From contig MCFH01000006.1 of NCBI GenBank assembly GCA_002104945.1, forward strand, positions 558,001 to 622,000: 64,000 nt of DNA. Reading direction: 5' to 3'. This document shows positions 808-36,973 of the stretch, one piece after another. The DNA comes from Piromyces finnis finn. Its lineage: Eukaryota; Fungi; Neocallimastigomycota. The translations under genes and the position numbers were made by a program. Below the pieces are notes generated by a model that was given only the letters and a program-made list of their open reading frames with translations, did no database searches and had not been told where the DNA came from. Each line of letters starts with the position of its first letter. Position 1 is the first letter of the stretch.

Positions 808-1958
808 ATGGTAGGAAAAATTATATTAAATAATAATGAAAATTCATCCACATTATATGTAACAACAATAATAATACTATAATATATATCTATTTACTTA
901 AATAGTCAAAGGGTTTATCAATTAAGGAAGCATTAAAACTTTGGGTAAATATATCATAATTTTTTGAATTACTTCAATTATGTTATCAAACTAAAATTGA
1001 TCATTAATAATATATTACAGGAAGAAAAAAATGGAACACCAGCTTCAGAAGCCACAGTTATTAAATTATTAATGCAACAACCATTTATTACAAAGATGGA
1101 TGCAACTCTTCAAACTTTACAAGCTTGCGAGTAATATTAGAAAAAATATAATAAATTTAGAAAGTTTTTTTTCCTAATAAAATTAATGATTATATTTTTC
1201 TTTTATTCTTTTTTTTTTTTTTTTTTTTTGACATTAAAAAAATATATATTGAAATATAACAATATAAATAAAAAAAAATGAAAATTTGAACATCCTACCA
1301 ATAACTAAAATATGATGGATATATAAATAATAATATATTAGACATTTATCATTATCTACAAATAATATTGAAAAAATAAGTAATTTAAATGGATTAAAAT
1401 TAAGAGTATTATCTCTTGGAAGAAATAATATTAAAAAGATTGAAGGTTTAGATGCAGTATCAGAAACTCTTGAAGAACTTTGGATATCATATAATCTCAT
1501 TGAAAAGTTTAATGGTATAGAATGTTGTAAAAAGTTAAAGGTATTATATGCAAGTAATAACAAAGTTAAAGCTTGGGAAGGAATTACATGTTTGGTAATA
1601 TATTTAAATTATCAATATATATAAAAAATAAAATAAAAAAAAAAAAAATACATAAATTTTACTGAAAGATATAAGAAATAATTTTCAATCATATTATTTT
1701 ATTGTAATAAAATAATTATTTATATTAATATATAAATTTTTTTTAATAACAACAATTCTAATAAAAATCAAATTACAAATACTTCAGAGTAGTCTTCCTG
1801 CTCTTGAAGATGTATTATTATCTGGTAATCCATTGGAAGAAAAATGTACTGCGGAAGGTACATGGAGAGATGAATTTACCAAAAAATATACTCAAGTTAA
1901 AAAATTAGATGGTAAACAAATTATCAGAGAAGAAGAAGAAGGAGAAGAAGAAAGTTAA
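808..1958 (+). CDS. DNAL1: Axonemal outer-arm dynein light chain 1 (LC1, SDS22-like LRR), 191 aa, 5 exons
   Basis: Exons 808-810 (ATG), 906-944, 1021-1130, 1342-1594 and 1788-1958, all GT-AG, total 576 nt in frame. Translation [19 protein letters not shown]...[32 protein letters not shown]...[29 protein letters not shown]...LLSGNPL...KKLDG matches the LC1/DNAL1 sequence I know closely. Confidence 0.95.
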
Positions 1959-2467
1959 AAAAGAAATTTAACTTACAAACTTTTTTTATTTGAATTCAAG
2001 TTATTTATAAATAATTTTCTATTACATATATTATTCCTATATTTAAAATTGGAAATAGCTATTTTTTTTTATAGACTTTTAATTTTATTCTTTAAACATT
2101 CTATTATTAATTAAACTTTGTTATTTATGTAAAAAAACAATACATAATAATATTTTATATTAACTTGTTCTTTCACATAAAAACTAATGATTTATAAACC
2201 TCCATAATTAATTTTTTTTAAAAATAATAAATTGTATTATTTAAAACTTTAATTACCAATTTCTTTTTTTTTTTTTTTTACTTTTCTTTTTCAATTATTG
2301 ATGATAAAAGTTGGATTTATTTTCCAAAGTTATTACTTCAAAATACTAATGTAAAATGGTTATTTTATATAACAATAACTAATAATATATATAAATGAAA
2401 TAGTAAAAGCATAAATAATATTTTGATTTATTATTGAAAAACCTTTTATTATTATTATTGAAAAACC

Positions 2468-2636
<169 letters not shown>

Positions 2637-3782
2637 GAATCTACAAACACTATAAATAGAATATTTAATTAAATTATTGGACTTTTTATTTTTTATATTA
2701 AATTTTAATTTAACATAGTTTAATACACCTATTTATTGCGGCTTTTAAAATAATATCAAAACACTTTTCATTTAATTTTAAAAGGTTTATATTGAATGTT
2801 TGTGGCTAAACTTTTCTATTTTTTGAACCAAGTATCAAAATAAATAATATTCAATATAATATAATATATTTATAATATATTATAATAAATTAAAATTTAT
2901 TTTGTGATACGAACATTAATTAATTTTTAAAATATCAACTTTTTATTATATTTTAAACTTTTCAAAAAAAAATCTTTTTTTTTTTTTTTTAATAAAGTAA
3001 AAAAATAAAAAGTAGAAACTTTGAAGTTATAGCTACAAAAGAGAGTGGAAAATTGGTTTTCTTTATATTGAAAGAAGGTAGAAAAAAACAAAAGCAAAAA
3101 AAAAATAAATAAAAGCAAAAGCAAAAGCAAAAAAGAAATCTCTAAAAGGATAAAGTAAATAAAATTAAAATTCAATTAAAATTTTAATAAATTATAAATA
3201 AAAATGAAAATATTTTCAATTTAAACAAGAGTATTTAAAAGCAAAAAACACATTGATAAAAAAAAAAAAGTTTTAAAGTCACATAAACTGTTGAAAGAAT
3301 ACACTTTTTTTAAATATATATTAATACTTTTCTTTTTTTTTTTTTTTTTTTTTTTTTTGAATATATACTAAAATTAAATTTTATAAATATTACCAAACTC
3401 TAGAAAAAAAAAAAAAGAAAAAAAGCATAAAATCTAATATATACCCAACATATAATTCTTTCTTTCTTTTTTTTTATTATTTGAAAATTTTAAAAATAAG
3501 TTTCAATATTTACCCTTTAAATTGTTTTTAGAATTTTCAATTATGTAAGTATTTAAATGCATATTTAAATATTAAATAAACAATAGAAAAAATAAATTTT
3601 CTAATTTTATAAATATAAATTTATAAATAATATTTTTTTTTTTTTTTAAAAAAAAAGTAGTTTGTTTCCTTCATCAGCAATAATTTATACATATAATCAT
3701 TTTTATTTATACTTAAATAAGTAAAAGCAACCTATTATAAAAAAAAAATCAATGACAATATAATATAATAAGTTTCAATAAA

Positions 3783-5120
3783 ATGATATTTTTATTACTA
3801 ATACTATTAAGTGTAATAAACTATAGTAACCAAGAGTTTTTAACATCTTCTAAAATATATATAAATGGTGATTATTATTCAATAGCAAGCTTAAATGAAC
3901 CCTGTATTGTTGATAATTCATCTGCAACCTTACCTCTTGAAAGAGGAATTGGTTTAAATAATTGTGAAAGTGGTTTAACTTGTTTTAATTTTCATTGTAT
4001 ATTTCCATCAGAGGAAAATCAACCTTGTGAATATCTTTTTTTCAAAAACATTACAAAAATATCTGAAGTAGGATTTGATAGAAGTAATTGTACAAGTGAA
4101 TTTTATTGTCATCCCTTTGATAATGTATGTAAAAAAACCAAGGAAATTAACGAAAAGTGTGAAAATAATGAAGAATGTATTAATATTCTTCAACCAAATT
4201 CAACATGTTATAACGGAAGATGTACACTATCATCAATGGTTCCACATCCACAAAATAGTCGTTATTTCTTTATTTTCTTTTTCTTGTCAATTTTAATTTA
4301 TATATATTATCGTCAATATACTATACAGGAAGCTCAATTAAATCGTTTGAACGAACTTGCAGCACAAGGTATGCTTGAAAGAAGATGTGATCCAGAAATA
4401 GAAACATTACCACCTTATTCTCCACCTTCATCCACTTTTCTTGCCGAAAATGAAAATGATAATACCCACTCCTTAATTTCCCCACCAAGTTATCATCAAT
4501 TCCCAACTGTTGATATCAGTCCTCAGGGAACCATGATAAATACTTCAACTACAAATTCACCAAATATTCTCACGGATTCTATTCTACACTCCATAAACGT
4601 AAATACAACCAACAATTCAATAACAACGGCAAATAGATCAACAAATCAAAATCTTTTGTCAGCCAATCCAAGATTGTCTTTCATATCAACTCAAAGTTCA
4701 TTATTAATACCAAATACACCACCACCAAGTTATTCTCAACCTACAACACCATACTTGTACGATATAGAAAATGAAAATGGCGAAAATAATAATACAAGCA
4801 ATAATGATGATAATGATAATGAGGCACTATTACCACCAATTCCTACAAATTCAAATGTTACTCAACCACCAGTAGCACATCCACATAACAATTCACGAAC
4901 CTATAATCTTGTGAATAATGTCACAACCATGAATGTAAATAGATATTCAACGCTGTCAAATCCAGAAGATCGTTCCGATCAGAATAATAATAATTCAAAT
5001 CGATCCAGTTATCGTCGTAGTACGATTAGTCTTAGAAGAAGTAGTCTTCGTCACTCTATCACCCTGGATTCCAATTCCAATATTAATTTATCCATGGAAA
5101 GTAGTCCTCCTCCTCATTAA
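3783..5120 (+). CDS. Single-exon type I membrane protein, 445 aa: signal peptide, Cys-rich ectodomain, one TM, low-complexity cytosolic tail with PY motifs
   Basis: Hydrophobic N-terminus MIFLLLILLSVINYS, about 12 Cys in C-x-C clusters, TM YFFIFFFLSILIYIYY, tail motifs LPPY, PPSY and PPSY. Confidence 0.85.
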   Translation: MIFLLLILLSVINYSNQEFLTSSKIYINGDYYSIASLNEPCIVDNSSATLPLERGIGLNNCESGLTCFNFHCIFPSEENQPCEYLFFKNITKISEVGFDRSNCTSEFYCHPFDNVCKKTKEINEKCENNEECINILQPNSTCYNGRCTLSSMVPHPQNSRYFFIFFFLSILIYIYYRQYTIQEAQLNRLNELAAQGMLERRCDPEIETLPPYSPPSSTFLAENENDNTHSLISPPSYHQFPTVDISPQGTMINTSTTNSPNILTDSILHSINVNTTNNSITTANRSTNQNLLSANPRLSFISTQSSLLIPNTPPPSYSQPTTPYLYDIENENGENNNTSNNDDNDNEALLPPIPTNSNVTQPPVAHPHNNSRTYNLVNNVTTMNVNRYSTLSNPEDRSDQNNNNSNRSSYRRSTISLRRSSLRHSITLDSNSNINLSMESSPPPH

Positions 5121-28800: not shown

Positions 28801-31800
28801 AAAAAAGCAGCCTTTTGCTGAATTCACGCTATTGTCACTTCATTAACAACAGTGTAAAAAATAATTATAAAAGGTATAAAGAATAAATATGAATGATGTA
28901 ATAACTTTTATGGTTTTATAATAATATTAATGAATGAAGAATTCATAGCAATTCTAACTAACTATTAAAAAATATTGTTTAAGTGATTGATTAATGATAT
29001 TAATTAATTGTTATTATTATATAATAAAGTTTTATATTAATAAAAAAAGTGCTTATAAGTGCCATCATGTGTAATATTAAAAAAAAACGGTAAAGTTTAA
29101 ATTTGAGGTTTTTTTTTTATTTGTCGAATTAATGAAGTATTTAAATAGTTTATAAAAAGCATAATAGTGTTTTCTTTTGAAAAGAAAACTTTTGAGCTTT
29201 ATTAATCAATCTTTTATTTAATATTAATGAATATTTCATTTGTATTTATAAAATAAAAGACTTTTTGATTTTACAAAAGTAATCATATCACTATATATCT
29301 TTTTTTTTTTTTTAAATATTGAGATAAAAATGTTTTTTTTTTTATTAAATAATGACTTTGAATTTATTTTTATCAAAGTCATTCTTTTTTTTTGCTTAAA
29401 ATTGTTGTTTATTAATGTTAATCTACAATACTAACAACCAAAATTAATTTTAATTTAATAATAAAAATAATAATGAAATAAATTTAAATGTCGCCATGAA
29501 GTTTTGACGGTTAAAAACCTTCTTAATAATTGCAAATTTCTTGTTTCTTTTTTTCCTTTTTCTTTTTTAATTAATTAAAATGATTTGATTTGATTTATAA
29601 GACCTAAAATTTATTAAAATTTATTATTAAATAGAAACAATGACTATGACAGAGGCAGATTAAAGAAGTTCTAGTAGGTTCAATAGAAAAAGAATGTCGA
29701 TAATGATACCATCACAGGTATTATTACTATGAAAGAATAATAATAATACTTTTTTAATTATTAAACCTATATAAATAATAAAGAATGATAAACTTACCTA
29801 TGTCCATTAATAATAACTATATTATGAATGACTGAATGACTTTCTAATTCTCATTATTGAACGGCTTTAATATTAAAAACTTTATCTTTTTTTGTCAAAT
29901 TTTGAAATTTTTTTAATATTTAAAAAAAATTAAATAATAAATATTCCATACAATTTTTTGTCACACAATATAAAGATAAAATGTACAACATTATTTAAAC
30001 CAATAGTATTCCATATATTTTAATTAATAATGTACAATCCATAAAAGTACATTTGAATCATAAAAAATAGGGGTAATTATAATGATATTATCATTTTATA
30101 AAATTTAAAAAAAATGGATCATCCTTCATGACTATTGGATGTCATTCTACAGTAGCCTCTGTTTTAAAAATAAAAATAGTTGTCTTTATCATAAATTTAC
30201 AAAAGATTTTGTTGGGGTAAAAAAGTCGTTGTTGTATTTGAGACTCTTAGAGTTAATAAAGGTTCAAAATCTTGTTATTTATTAAAATAAAAAAAAAAAA
30301 AAAGAAAATGAGGATGAATAATACAATATAATGATGGTAATAAAAAAACTTTAAAATTTATGACTTGAACCCAAAGTAAAATTAAGGTATATTACATGAA
30401 TGACTTTAAACCAATGGATTTATATAAAGTATTATTAAATGTAAATTAATATATAGGTATATATATATAATAATTATGAAATCGATGGTGTTAGGTGGCA
30501 ATTAAAAAAAAAAAGAAGTATTTTTTTTTATAATTGTCTTTTTGATAATTCTATTAGACTTGAATTGAATAGTACTTTATTAATGAAAAGATAAAACTGA
30601 TATTACTATTATTCAAAGTATTTATTTTTGATAGCTAATATCTTCATTATTAGGGGAAAAATATATATATTTTTTTATTTCAAATATTAAATCAAGTTAT
30701 ATTAATCAAAATTCTTTTAATAGTCTTTTTTATTTGTTTCTTTATATAAAATGCTTATTGCCATATCAAATCAAAATGTTAATGTTTTGTTAATAAATAA
30801 AACAAAAACAAAAAGTTCTAGAACTATGATGTAATTTATCTTTATACTATAACCCGGGTGAAGTCGGAAAAGACATTACCATATAAAGTATGTTATTAAA
30901 AAAAGATGATATTTTAAAATTCAAAGTTATGTTCTTTCTATCATTAATTTATATATCCCATTAGTATATAGGAAAATTACAATAGAAATATAAAATAAAA
31001 GATTATATATTGGCAAAAATAATTATAAATTAACCTATTTCTTGAATACTTTTTTTTTTTTTTTTTTGCATATAATCTTTTAAGTATAAATTGTTCTTTG
31101 TAATATTTAAAAATAAGGTAAAAAAAAAAAAAAGTATTAATCTTTTTTTTTGTAATATTGGAAAACTATTAAAAATTAAAAGAAACTTGGACTGTTATTA
31201 TTTTTATTATTTTTATTAAAATTTTGACCTTTTTTTTTTAAAAAAAAAATAATTATTCAATAATATATTAAATTAACATTAAGTAATAATAAAACCAATA
31301 ATAAAAGTTTCAATAATTAATATATTTAAAAAATTACTTTAAAAATTATTTATATTTATTGATAATATACATTATACACACTATAAAAAAAAGTTTCACT
31401 ATTTATCATTTTGTAAGTATACTCAATATTAATTATATAAAAATAATTAATTAGGATTGAAGGTCTATAATAAATAAAATTATTTTATACAAAGTTTGTT
31501 GGCTTTAAAACAATAGAAAGAAGAAACTAAAAAAAAAAGGGTTCCTACAAGACTTTATATCCACAATACAAAAAAAAAAAAAAAAACATATGAAACTAAA
31601 ATATGTTTTTTATTTAAAGTTAAATAATTATACATTGTATGACATTGTATCGTATAACCTTTAAATACTAAACACATAAATATATTACAATATATATTTA
31701 ATATATATTAACTTTATATTAACTTTAAATTTTTTTATCAAAAAAAAAAAAAAAATAATTATTCATACTTTTTTTTAGAATGAACTAAATATTAGATGTT

Positions 31801-32433
31801 CGTTTTTATTTTTTATTTTATTACGATTAGATAGATTTAATCATCGAATTCCTTAATTATTTAAAATAATAAGAAAAATATATATGTACTAGTTTAAGCA
31901 TTCCTTAATTAAAATATTATATATTAAAAGTATCTTTAAAAATTCTAAAATATATTTTTATAATTTTTGTTTCCTCACTTTTGTTTTTTATACTATGCTT
32001 ATTTTTTTTATTTAAATAAAATATAATTAAAAAAAATATTACAATTTTATTCTACTCATTATTATTTACTTTTATAACAGTTTAATGATTTTTTTTTTTA
32101 AAAAATCTTAAAAATAGGAAAGTTTAATTTTATATGTAAATAATATTTAATTACAACAATTGCAACAATAATATAATAATGTATTTCCTATTCATGTTAT
32201 TCTTATCATTTGTTCTTATTTTATATTAATAATTATACATTATTATTAAGAAAGTAATTTCATAAAGAAATATATATACTTTTTAACCACTACTAACCAT
32301 CATCAACATAGTATTAAAATTTTGATAATATACATTAAAATTCATTCACACTTTTAAATATTTTCTTTTTTTTTTTTAATTTTTTTATTTTATTATTTTT
32401 AATTTACATAGTTATATTTTATTTTTTATTAAA

Positions 32434-32830
32434 GGTTCAAGCGCTACGACAATTCACTTATATTTCTATAATTACTTTTTTTATCAAAAATAATTATTTT
32501 TTAAATATGAATCCGCTCTTGAGTTTGTACCTTCAATTTAAATATATCATACAAAAAAAACAAGGTTCAAGCGCTAGTCAATCATAATTTTTTTTTTCAA
32601 TATGATCCGCTCTTGATACACCTAAATTTTCTTTTTTATAAAAGTTTTAGGTTTAAGCGCTACGACAATTCATTATCCTATAAATGTATCAAACATTTAT
32701 AAGATATTGAATCCGCCTTAAGTTTGTACCTATAACTTTTTCTTTATTTGAGAAAGATTTAATTTGGTTCAAGCGCTAGTCAATTCCTTTCTGTTTGAGT
32801 GTTTATTGGAATCCGCCTTGTATTTGTACC
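32434..32830. ncRNA. Array of four conserved-base, variable-loop hairpins (candidate structured ncRNA family; identity and strand unknown)
   Basis: Units 32434-32531, 32564-32622, 32650-32730 and 32766-32830. Each reads GGTTYAAGCGCTA(CGA|GT)CAAT...RATCCGC(T)CTT(GA|AA|GT)...ACC, with pairing arms and compensatory changes. The repeat itself is certain. The RNA interpretation is inferred. Confidence 0.55.
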
Positions 32831-34496
32831 AAATTACTTTCCAATTTTAACTGAATTTTGAAAAAAAAATATTGGGGAGCAAACTTTGAAATAACACATT
32901 TTGAGAAATCTTATTAATTATTATTTTTTTTTTTTTTGATAAATAAAAAATAAAAAAATTATATTTGAATGAATAATTAATTGACTTTTTTTTTTTCAAA
33001 GTAGTTTTTATGGGTATATTTAAATTTTAAATTTCATTTTGAAATTTGAAGGGTATATAAACATCATTAAGAAAAAAAAAAGAGAAGTCAAAATGATTAA
33101 TTATTCGAAAATTAAATTTCCTTTTTTTTTTTTTTTGATGCTTTTCAATTTATTTTAGTATTTAAAAATATTTGAAAAGCACGAAGAAAAAAAATGAAGG
33201 AAGAAAATATGTCTTTTATACTTTTTTTTTTTTTGTATTAGTTTTATTGTAAATATCTATAAATATTTCAATTTAAAAGGATATATATAGTTTTAATATT
33301 TTAAATTATTACTAATAAATTAATCATTTTATTTTTATTTTTATTTTTATTTCTTTATTCTTTCGATTAGTTGAATTTCGTAATACATTTAGAATTTTTA
33401 ATATCATTGATCATTTAATTTTATTAAATGTTACATTTATTTTTAAAAAAAGGAAAAGTAACTAATTCTAATTCTTTTTTTTTTAATAATTTAATTAATT
33501 CAAAATATAATTTATAATTGAAAATTTAATTTCTTAAATAAATATTTATAGTCATACAATTAAATTTAGCTTTAAATGATTCAATTTTTAATTCTAAAAA
33601 ATTGATTAAACGAATTAGTCTAAAAATAGAATTTAGTAAATTAATCTAATTACAGACCTATTTAAAGAGAATTATTAAAACAACACCAACAACAAATAAA
33701 AAAAAAAAAAAAGAAAAGTACGAAATAAATTTAAATAAAAAGTAATAATAATTATCAAATGGTAGTACTACTACAAATAAATAAATTTATTAATAAATTG
33801 ATAAAAATAATGATTAATTGAAAATAAAATAATATATATTTTGCTTTTTTTTTTTTTTATTATTATTATTATTATACCATTTTTTAGTCTTATAAATTCA
33901 TACTCCATAATTATAATTTATAGATCTATTTATTTATTTTCAACAATTTTTTTTTTTTTTTTTCATATTAAAATTAAATCCATCATCTTTTTTCCATTAA
34001 ACATTAATTTGACAAAAATAAAATAAAATGCTTAATAAAAATTATAAATCAATTTTTATATTTATTTTTTTTTCTCTACTTTCAGCCCAAATCATTGACT
34101 ATTCATTTATAAATCCTAAAGTCCATAATTAAAAGTAATTTTGTTAATTGATTTTTTTTTTTTTTTTTTTAAAAAAAATTATAACAATAGTTTAATCATG
34201 CTAAAATTAGAAAAGTAAAAAATTTTGATGAATTTTGCAAAAAAAAAAAGTTTTGTTAAAACTATGTTATCTTCTGATAGTTTTATAATTATAATTTTTA
34301 TTATATATATATTATTTTATTTATATATATATTGAGTCATTAAATTTAATGAATAGGTTAATTAATATTTAAAATGTTTAATCGTTTTTTTTTTTTTTTT
34401 TTTTTTACTAATATTTTAACTTAGTATTTAAAAGTAATTTTTATTAGAATTACATTTAATGATTATTATTATTATTATATTGATTTATTGTTTTTT

Positions 34497-34532
<36 letters not shown>

Positions 34533-34704
34533 TTTTACGTTTGTATATAAAATGCCTTTTAGACCTTTTTTCCTTGATGCTTATAAATAAAAAGTTACTT
34601 AAGATATAATAGAAACATGATGAAAATTACTATAGGAAATTTAGTTTTTATTTTATATATAAAATTGAAATAAATTAGTATGATGTTGAATTCTTTGATT
34701 AAAA

Positions 34705-36973
34705 TTACTAATATTTTATAAACTAATATTTAATTCAATTTTTTTTTTTTTTTTGTATTATTACCATGAAATACGAAATTGTATTGGTTGGTGGAACTGT
34801 TCTTTCTGAATCTGGTACAGCGGAGAAAATCTTAAAGGAATTATCATCTATTTCTAAGGATTCATCTACACGCATAATAGATGCTACATTACCACATCTA
34901 TAACAGTAATTTGGTGCACTCCATACAGTAACTAAATTATTATCTGGGAACATAAATTTATAACCTTCTTGTACCAATTGGTGAGCTCTTGCAATTAATG
35001 TCAAATTATTTACGTGATTAAACTGTATACAAGAAAAGACATTTAAAGGTAATAATTTTATATTTAATTTGAAGGGTAAAGTATATAATGTACAATATAT
35101 AAATAATAAAAATGATTGAAATAGAATTTATATATATAAAAAAATAAATATGCATAATCTTAAAGAGAAATATGAGAAATAATATTACAAATATTTACCT
35201 CTGATGTAACTTTGCTACCGAATAACCAACCAGCACCACGTTGACTTACACCCCAGGTATCAATATCATCTGGATCTGACCACATTAAATCTTTTTTTAA
35301 ATGTAATTGATAATAATGACAAAAAAAAATTTTTTTTTTAATAAATATTATTTTTATTGATGATTTTTTATATTTAAATTTCCTTTTTTTACTTACCACA
35401 GAAGGCACCTTCGTGTGGAATTTCTTGACATCTTTGGATAGTACGAATTTGATCAAGAGTTCTAACATCTGGTGATAAACCACCGTGAACACATAAAACT
35501 CTACCATCAACAATCTTTATTTTTAAATAAAATGTAAATATAAGATTTTTTCTTTTTAAAAAATAAACCAATATATATTATTTATTAAGGATGACTTACA
35601 GCTGCAACAGTTAAGTAATCGAAAACTGAACAACAGTATTTCCATACATTAGCATTACCGTATTTATTTTGACATTCATCTTTTGAAATTAAATGGTTAA
35701 AAGAATTACCATAGATTTAAAATTAAAATTAATTAAATAATAGAAAAAAAATAATTGTTGTTAGTATAGCATAATATTACGAGAGTTTAGTGTAACAGCT
35801 TAGTTATATGAAGCACTACTTACCAAAGAAACCATATACTTGAGTAATTTGTCTACTTTCATGATTACCACGAAGAAGAGTGATTTTATCTGGATATCTT
35901 TAAAATTGGAATAATTTATTTACATAATATTAAAATTTTAATATTAAATATAAAATGTATAATATATTTTATGTTTATAAAAATTTACCTAGCCTTTAAA
36001 CATAATAATAAAGTGAAAGTTTCTAAACTGTAATAACCACGGTCAACAAAATCACCCTTTATATTTTTTTGTTTTTATTTTAATGATTAATTTTTAAATA
36101 AGATTATCATTGTTATCATTAATGTTATTATTATTATTAATTATGTTTTATTAATAAATATATATATACATAAATAAATAATTGATAATATTTTCTAAAT
36201 TATTATGTAAAACAAATATAACAGTTACCATAAAAATGTAATTAGTGCTTGGAATTTCACCACCGACTCTGAACAATTCTTTTAAATCGAAGAATTGGCC
36301 GTGAATATCACCACAAACAGTAACAGGTGTATGTACTGGTTGGATATTTGATTCTTCTACTAATAATTCTTTTACCTGTTTATCAATATTATTTTTTTAT
36401 AATAAATATTATAATATATATTGTGGTATATATATTATTATTGAAAAAAAAAAAAAAAACATATTAAAAGTTGTTAATGGTTATTGAAAATATTCGTTAT
36501 CTATCAAATATTCTATTTGTTTGGGTGTAAATGCTTTTAAATAGATAATATTATTTGATATTTAAAAGTATTGTTTCTTAAAAATAAATTTAGCAATTTT
36601 TATGATAACTTATAAAAGGTTAGATTAATTTTGATTGATATAATATTCTTAATATTCTACTTGTACTTTGAATATATTGTTTCCTTAGTTAATTAAAATA
36701 CTATATATTGAAATTCATTCATTTTTTACGAAATTTGAGAATATTTTATTATTTATTATTAATATGAACCAACTGAAAGAAATTCTTAAAATAATCCTTT
36801 CTTAATTATTTCATTGAGTATAATGTTTTTAACAAGATATGAAAAGAAAGGAAAAATAATAAAAAAAACCATTTTATGATATTTGCCTTTTCACATAAAG
36901 CTTTTATGTCTGATTCTGGTAAATAACGACATTCTTTAATTTGAGCTAACCATTGATCAGGATCCCCTGCCAT
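34705..36973 (-). CDS. PPP6C: Ser/Thr protein phosphatase 6 catalytic subunit (Sit4/Ppe1/PPP6C), multi-exon
   Basis: Starts [29 protein letters not shown]|[17 protein letters not shown] motifs GDIHG, GDFVDRG, RGNHE and HGGLSP are present, with PP6-type [28 protein letters not shown] and [12 protein letters not shown]. Ends ISYFM. Confidence 0.93.

Follow-up and report, generated by a model that had tools for sequence, protein, structure and literature searches.

The hairpin array and its surroundings

The window, by which we mean the whole 64 kb stretch of DNA that was analysed, has a GC content of 14–28% and contains a tandem array of four related hairpin units (at positions 32434–32531, 32564–32622, 32650–32730 and 32766–32830). 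These are 98, 59, 81 and 65 nt long and are separated by linkers of 32, 27 and 35 nt, exactly as described in the initial annotation of this DNA. One arm of the unit (GGTTYAAGCGCTA) is present as four exact copies, and there are no others in the 64 kb window even when up to two mismatches are allowed; about 0.33 matches (≤2 mismatches) are expected, and four matches were reached in 0 of 100 shuffles. A covariance model of the unit (R1, see below) applied to the window finds the four known units and no further one. The compensatory change that had been pointed out in the third unit (TTAAG:CTTAA) is found, as are the inner stems that differ from one unit to the next. The stems are present as annotated, although the basal one is longer than had been claimed, with 9 bp that reach into what were taken to be linkers.

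The array lies in what had been called a gene desert, and the description is apt: from 26 to 39 kb there are only two open reading frames of at least 70 aa, both of them in the minus strand (34.7–35.5 kb) and both parts of one spliced gene. This gene occupies 34544–35680 on the minus strand and has introns at approximately 35023–35198, 35291–35396 and 35515–35599 (CT..AC on the plus strand). There is no open reading frame longer than 50 aa between 31.8 and 34.2 kb, and the RNA described below is therefore non-coding. A fungal-type receptor-like protein is encoded in the window, and faecal metagenomes share words with this stretch. A source among the Neocallimastigomycota, the anaerobic gut fungi, fits these sequences because of the ~18% GC of the genome, the fungal-type proteins, a CBM10 dockerin gene that adjoins an orthologous array (see below), and the faecal metagenomes. 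The Neocallimastigomycota are the main fungal degraders of plant fibre in herbivore guts, and to our knowledge almost nothing is known about non-coding RNA in this group.

Related arrays and the structure of the hairpin

Homologues of the array, which the initial annotation had proposed to look for, are readily found in related DNA. One exact-pattern scan of a metagenome collection gave 18 loci, twelve of which have 17–38% GC and carry whole arrays with the same unit order as in the window; these twelve array-bearing contigs also carry the 5′ block and the upstream elements described below. The other six loci are in GC-rich coding DNA and are chance matches with no covariance-model match, and the same is true of five matches to the pattern in the coding DNA of prokaryotic genomes, Methanothrix included. 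Model R1, which was built from 21 units, finds 48 units in the array-bearing loci and the window. In the alignment of these 48 units, which was fitted to the model and therefore favours the structure, although the P1 and P2 helices (see below) are anchored by invariant letters on both sides, 93.9% of the cells are paired, compared with 78.0% in shuffles, and changes on both sides of the helix are seen at 15 of 22 pairs (163 cells). Any of five measures of pairing and covariation was reached by none of 500 shuffles, and when the partner is slid by one column the pairing falls to ~51% or less. The strong covariation and the conservation in related loci support selection both on the pairing and on an unpaired core that contains G and C.

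The units cluster by array position and not by taxon, and we refer to the four positions as types A to D. The split of A and C from B and D has support of 98/96, with 95/89 for type B and 95/70 for type D, and the mean core identity is 0.83 between units of the same type in different taxa versus 0.66 between units of different type within one taxon. Some units that group with type A in the tree had been labelled C automatically. Judged by these sequences, types A to D are older than the taxa that carry them. Two loci (L003 and L005) have six to seven units, with extra A–B pairs. In L003 the array spans 259–1189 and the extra unit (1102–1189) is 3′ beyond the last A, and in L005 the array is at 493–1413 and includes a degenerate mini-unit at 1263–1329. 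Because the additions are A–B pairs, the repeated module looks like a pair composed of one GUCGUA-type and one GACUA-type hairpin.

Other parts of the array are not conserved. The linkers are kept neither in sequence nor in length (27 to >100 nt among the loci), and the variable loops are not kept between taxa, with the exception of a UUGAU apex in two of the hairpin types. The earlier suggestion of a guide-like or repeat-spacer array is thus not sustained. The neighbouring genes also differ between loci and include a dockerin enzyme, a Cys/Met PLP enzyme and a CHY/RING protein, so the RNA gene appears to stand alone and conserved synteny points to no encoded protein partner. One of these neighbours, at 1353–3809 in locus L001, encodes an Agd3-type deacetylase that has CBM87, CE and C-terminal domains and is joined to a CBM10 fungal dockerin. 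The gene shares the strand of the array, from which it is separated by 430 nt on the downstream side.

The hairpins had initially been read on the plus strand. The pairing statistics show that the RNA strand is the minus strand, and the arm previously labelled 5′ is therefore the 3′ arm of the RNA; the RNA contigs described below carry no direction of their own. For 46 units from the window and related loci (with 8-nt flanks), the minus-strand fold is the better one in 37, with a mean folding gain of 4.4 kcal/mol (Wilcoxon p = 4e-7). RNAalifold applied to 21 short units read on the minus strand predicts a basal stem of 9 bp in which G.U and U.G pairs are frequent, and the helices of the 48-unit alignment contain 110 G.U cells versus 10 A.C cells (70 versus 10 without one constant G.U pair). 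The proportion of paired cells in the same alignment is 93.9% if the minus strand is the RNA and only 84.2% if it is the plus strand.

This asymmetry also bears on whether the array acts at the level of DNA, for example as single-stranded-DNA recombination sites, as a foldback or MITE repeat, or as a neutral and decaying local duplication. Tandem and palindromic units are what such features would have, but the excess of G.U over A.C (110 versus 10) is strand-specific, the RNA is very abundant (see below), there is only one array in 64 kb, and the four types are in a fixed order in at least 12 loci with covariation far above that in shuffles. No recombinase or transposase gene is beside the array in any of the loci, and we regard a DNA-level role as scarcely credible. 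A MITE or foldback transposon in particular was rejected because the covariance model finds only four tandem units in the 64 kb and the orthologous arrays keep their order.

Each hairpin is constructed on the same plan. The basal stem (P1) has 9 bp, extends into the apparent linker, and covaries at eight of its nine pairs. It is followed on the 5′ side by a bulge, which is ACAAAC in types A, C and D and 3 nt in type B, and then by a 5-bp helix (P2, UCAAG:CUUGA) in which one pair is C-G in 33 units and U-A in 13 and is broken in none. Beyond P2 there is an A.G mismatch (types A and B) or a bulged G (types C and D), and after this two invariant pairs, G-C then C-G. These lead into an asymmetric internal loop of 1x5 or 1x6 in which a G is opposite GACUA (types B and D) or GUCGUA (types A and C). 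The next helix (P4) has 6 bp, with five of the six pairs covarying and the opening G.U replaced by A-U in two units, and the apical part of the hairpin is free to vary. The invariant letters are thus the unpaired ones, and the flanking stems change freely. Types A and C usually have a long A/U apical helix capped by UUGAU or UUGAA, and there are short C hairpins without either cap in three taxa. In all loci a second pairing (GGCG:UGUC) is open to the type A and type C cores; it extends P4 and excludes P2, and an alternative conformation is possible for these two types.

On the RNA the hairpins are in the order D, C, B, A, all four being on the minus strand. Hairpin D (32758–32838; covariance-model score 62.3 bits, E 1.5e-14) is the first, with the GACUA-type internal loop, a 6-nt 5′ bulge (ACAAAU in the window) and a purine-rich apical loop that is not conserved. 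Hairpin C (32642–32738; 51.8 bits) is the second and has the GUCGUA-type loop, a P2 of UUAAG:CUUAA and a long apical helix with a UUGAU loop; its minimum free energy on the minus strand is −23.4 kcal/mol (z = −5.2), and the apical UUGAU or UUGAA loop is kept in 7 of 10 orthologues. Hairpin B (32556–32630; 79.3 bits, E 2.4e-19), the third, has the GACUA-type loop, the 3-nt 5′ bulge and an A-rich apical loop. The last, hairpin A (32426–32539; 43.6 bits), has the GUCGUA-type loop, the ACAAAC bulge and a 12-bp apical helix, and with 8-nt flanks it folds at −24.5 kcal/mol on the minus strand versus −14.0 kcal/mol on the plus strand. We note that the linker between C and D (32739–32757 in the window) can form a small hairpin that is also present in L001 and L016 with a different sequence in each taxon, and this may be a fifth, unconserved structural element.

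The transcript and its upstream elements

Three RNA runs (X2, X3 and X4 are among the libraries) and one metatranscriptome were placed on the interval 29900–35800, and the stretch is present in several RNA-labelled runs from the organism of the window and in the metatranscriptome. The library types were only guessed as RNA, and it is the spliced contigs that show them to be so. The neighbouring minus-strand gene is represented by spliced contigs with CT..AC junctions at a depth of 404–606 in three libraries, and the intergenic interval 33643–34036 has a depth of ~0 in the same libraries; since the neighbour is spliced and the intergenic interval is empty, carry-over of DNA is negligible. The depth bins over the array are 18,186 and 22,692 in X4, 1,208 and 1,970 in X3, and 306 and 717 in X2, or 1.3 to ~50 times that of the neighbouring gene, although the depths may be sums over near-identical loci because some contigs point to paralogues. 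One such contig of 128 nt at 32661–32786 has 13 differences and 2 gaps (depth 5,638 in X4), and another, in X3, joins 32786 to 33015 (depth ~3,070); together they indicate that the organism expresses this family from at least one more locus.

Contigs with zero differences from the window cover 32408–32786 (X3, depth 1204), 32568–32786 (X2, 530) and 32757–32906 (X2, 745; X3, 1436). The fit of the RNA contigs gives an abundant transcript of ~0.5 kb on the minus strand, spanning 32408–32906 with both ends approximate, and this span folds at −102.5 kcal/mol (z = −4.07). The contigs, which carry no strand and drop rare forms, bridge the linkers, and the linker depth equals the hairpin depth. The initial annotation had proposed a polycistronic family of non-coding RNAs; a transcribed RNA is indeed present, but the discrete products of 60–100 nt that it suggested looking for are not what is seen, as contigs cross the linkers at the depth of the hairpins. 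Its broader suggestion of a structured and unannotated non-coding RNA under selection on both pairing and loop is well borne out, the array being transcribed, conserved, covarying and without an Rfam match.

Collinear similarity between the window and the longer of the related loci extends from ~32420 to ~33083 and then stops, with the BLAST alignments to L001, L006, L011, L012 and L016 ending at 33075–33083. In the order of the RNA strand this interval contains a distal element, an inverted repeat, a second element, an A/T-rich stretch, the 5′ block, an A-rich linker and hairpins D-C-B-A. The distal element (TTCTTRATGATGTTTATATACC, minus strand, 33052–33075) is likewise nearly invariant and has a TATA-like core, and there is one match to it in the window with one mismatch, where 0.01 is expected. 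The inverted repeat (AAATTTC..GAAATTT, 33029–33047) has both arms invariant in 10 loci, with a spacer that ranges from ~4 to 14 nt among them. The second upstream element (TAAATATACCC..ACTAC.TTGAAA, minus strand, 32993–33022) has a TATA-like start and hardly varies across 10 loci, and the stretch between it and the 5′ block is A/T-rich and unconserved. From their position the elements at 32993–33075 look like a dedicated promoter, and this role fits the arrangement in locus L017, in which two arrays (123–212 and 883–956) are head to head with the promoter-like elements between them. The degree of conservation of these elements is unusual for this genome.

The 5′ block (UAAGAUUUCUC..AAUGUG..GCUCCCC, minus strand, 32872–32913) is kept in 8 of 10 aligned loci, and RNAalifold finds no structure in it. 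Three proposals for this block were considered and rejected. A resemblance to a TPP riboswitch (GGGGAGC..UGAGAAAU) is on the plus strand, is without the pyrophosphate arm and has no Rfam match; a small open reading frame (MIKTHFEKS in L002) has a frame that is not kept in L001 or L006; and pairing of the block with the stretch before hairpin D has a weak consensus energy (−1.37) and competes with the basal stem of D. An abundant 197-nt contig in X2 and X3 stops fitting the genome inside the block, at 32906, and has 47 unmatched letters. A 5′ end at 32906 fits the depth bins of X2 and X4 and not those of X3, and there is no AG acceptor at this position; the break could represent a paralogue, an odd junction or an artefact.

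At the other end of the transcript there is an AAUAAA hexamer (minus strand, 32425–32430), 4 nt after hairpin A, and a 422-nt contig from X3 leaves the genome at 32408, 17 nt past the hexamer, with 43 letters unlike the window. The simplest reading is that there is a poly(A) tail at ~32408. Transcription by Pol III is unlikely because there are T runs inside the transcript (on the RNA strand), and separate Pol III genes with oligo-U ends were rejected for the same reason and because the contigs bridge the units.

Possible roles and relationships to known RNAs

The reading that we favour, albeit tentatively and with a little less than even confidence, is that this is a lineage-specific RNA with several protein-docking sites. 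The minus strand of 32408–32906 gives an abundant non-coding RNA of ~0.5 kb, probably a polyadenylated Pol II product specific to the anaerobic gut fungi, in which a conserved and unpaired 5′ block is followed by the four paralogous bulged hairpins D, C, B and A. The invariant unpaired core of each hairpin would be the docking site for an RNA-binding protein that is specific for both sequence and shape, and docking is suggested because the most conserved letters are unpaired while the surrounding stems change freely. The RNA would then be a multi-site scaffold or sponge, with four sites here and six to seven in some taxa. As the two flavours of site alternate (D,C and B,A), the working unit may be a hairpin pair, and a second contact is possible at the UUGAU loop that caps types A and C. 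Four copies of one conserved structured motif are present in one transcript and are bridged at high depth. A long functional RNA, and not a mere precursor, is suggested because the unpaired 5′ block is conserved and the linkers are as deep as the hairpins.

Processing of the same transcript into smaller RNAs is a less probable explanation, to which we nonetheless give appreciable weight. The transcript would be a polycistronic precursor that is cut at the hairpin bases, for example by an RNase III-type enzyme acting on the 9-bp stems, to yield four small RNAs of ~60–150 nt, each of which would form its own particle through the conserved core, in a family like the Y, vault and stem-bulge RNAs. 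Each hairpin is indeed autonomous, being closed by a long covarying stem that pairs its 5′ and 3′ ends, each type keeps its own identity across taxa, and the linkers between them vary in sequence and length as noted above. The hairpin region is also ~7 times deeper than the leader in X4, and the highly conserved upstream elements recall promoters of the snRNA or snoRNA type. However, all of the linkers are bridged by contigs at full depth, the unpaired 5′ block is conserved, which is unexpected for a pure spacer, and standard libraries under-sample RNAs shorter than 150 nt, such that a high depth is more easily obtained from the long form.

A cluster of Dicer substrates, with the mature small RNAs coming from the two conserved arm segments (~20 nt) and with loops of no consequence, is improbable. 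The combination of conserved arms, a free loop and clustered paralogous hairpins does resemble miRNA clusters, and the conserved segments are 19–22 nt long. Anaerobic fungi also respond to RNAi, for which an siRNA protocol has been published (PMC5796279). However, there are bulges of 6 nt and 5–6 nt on opposite strands, the unpaired letters of both arms are invariant, and the precursor is extremely abundant. A duplex bulged in this manner is unlike known Dicer substrates, and the weak matches to Rfam miRNA families are scattered and far below threshold. Interruption of the stem by these bulges likewise led us to reject a near-continuous miRNA-like duplex of ~22 bp.

The core might alternatively be a new catalytic or ligand-binding motif in tandem, either an aptamer or a ribozyme that processes the array by cleaving itself, and this we consider very improbable. 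Motifs of this kind are usually recognised by an asymmetric internal loop that does not vary and is carried on covarying helices, as here, and the mutually exclusive second pairing open to types A and C (GGCG:UGUC) would suit one. However, the contigs are uninterrupted through all four units, a catalytic centre would not usually come in two sequence flavours as this core does (GACUA or GUCGUA), and no ribozyme or riboswitch family is matched even at E values up to 10. The self-cleaving ribozymes considered (hammerhead, twister, twister-sister, pistol, hatchet, HDV-like and hairpin) and the TPP riboswitch gave no match at E≤10 for the region or at E≤5 for eight loci.

Rfam comparisons for known families were negative throughout. 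None of the 4227 families matches the window at its gathering score, and nothing consistent is found at permissive thresholds (E up to 10 for the region, E up to 5 for eight orthologous loci). The sub-threshold matches (snR87, miRNA and others) are single and differ from locus to locus. Literature searches returned no description of such an RNA, and neither Rfam nor the searchable literature contains this family. If it is a repeat-module RNA as in the docking reading, which we hold provisionally and at just short of an even chance, then it is of a known functional kind with a new motif in a new lineage. There is a smaller and rather doubtful chance that, with this bulged hairpin of 70 nt, the anaerobic gut fungi have a new RNA motif on which a previously unrecognised class of particle is based, either as four excised small RNAs or through a core with its own activity. 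In the first case the set would be a counterpart of the Y1/Y3/Y4/Y5 set in layout and not by descent, and in the second the activity may be ligand binding, self-processing or a switch between the two mutually exclusive pairings of the type A and type C cores. Separate release of the hairpins, or an activity of the core, would if true make this a new RNA class. Model R1 is a ready covariance model for annotating gut-fungal genomes, the hairpin is a defined RNA bait for finding the protein partner, and the array is a test case for the construction of stable RNA structure at a genomic GC content of ~18%.

Several other identities were considered and rejected. ARAGORN predicts no tRNA genes in the window and there is no match to the Rfam tRNA clan; the motifs GGTTCAAG and GAATCC, which might suggest a tRNA, including a permuted or T-loop-like one, are on the non-RNA strand. 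Box C/D snoRNAs are rejected as there are no RUGAUGA/CUGA boxes in any unit on either strand, and snR87, which is the best Rfam match and the only one to a snoRNA, scores 22.9 bits where its gathering score is 37 (E 0.17). C/D guide stretches do not fit because the conserved letters are common to all units and the variable parts are not kept between taxa. For box H/ACA, the ACAAAC bulge does not conform to ANANNA and is on the 5′ side of the hairpin, the internal loop does not vary as a guide pocket would, and there is no Rfam match. A K-turn was rejected on inspection of the alignment, the letters flanking the loop being U-A and G-G and not GA/GA, and the motifs of loop E, the U1A site (AUUGCAC) and the She2 zipcode (CGA) are, by eye in the alignment, absent or on the wrong strand. 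The registers do not fit a telomerase template or a PBS/tRNA complement. The ACAAAC bulge is complementary to UUUGAU apical loops, but its variants show no covariation with them.

Among known systems, the closest in organisation are the repeat-module RNAs such as the Xist A-repeat, the roX stem-loops, the NORAD units and bacterial CsrB/RsmZ, which display one protein-binding motif many times. As in these, there is an abundant transcript with copies of a short structured motif and unconserved spacers, and the number of copies depends on the taxon (four here, and six to seven in L003 and L005). There is no sequence or structural homology to any of them, however. The array repeats a bulged hairpin of 70 nt whose 1x5 or 1x6 internal loop comes in two alternating flavours, and the lineage, the anaerobic gut fungi, is a different one. 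The polycistronic snoRNA clusters of fungi and plants are similar in having tandem structured RNAs with terminal stems and unconserved spacers in one non-coding Pol II transcript. Unlike these, the array has no C/D (RUGAUGA, CUGA) or H/ACA boxes, the would-be UGA is in a covarying Watson-Crick helix, and one internal loop is common to all units, which therefore have no individual guide sequences. With miRNA clusters the array shares the clustered paralogous hairpins, conserved arms and free loops, but it differs in its large bulges on both strands, its invariant unpaired letters and its very abundant precursor.

The Y RNAs and the nematode stem-bulge RNAs are similar in another way, as they are small end-paired hairpins whose loops vary while the bulged lower stem is conserved, and the presence of four clustered paralogues in a fixed order adds to the likeness. 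The Y RNAs are separate Pol III genes with oligo-U ends, whereas the units here are co-transcribed, and UGACUA is in an unpaired loop here and not in a strand of the Ro-binding helix, with no GGUCCGA-like partner. Y RNA itself was rejected as an identity, as there is no Y_RNA match at E up to 10, the terminal helix covaries and is not fixed in sequence, and UGACUA does not pair. Types B and D have a 9-mer, UUGACUAGC, that is probably also present in the 3′ strand of human Y3 and Y5.
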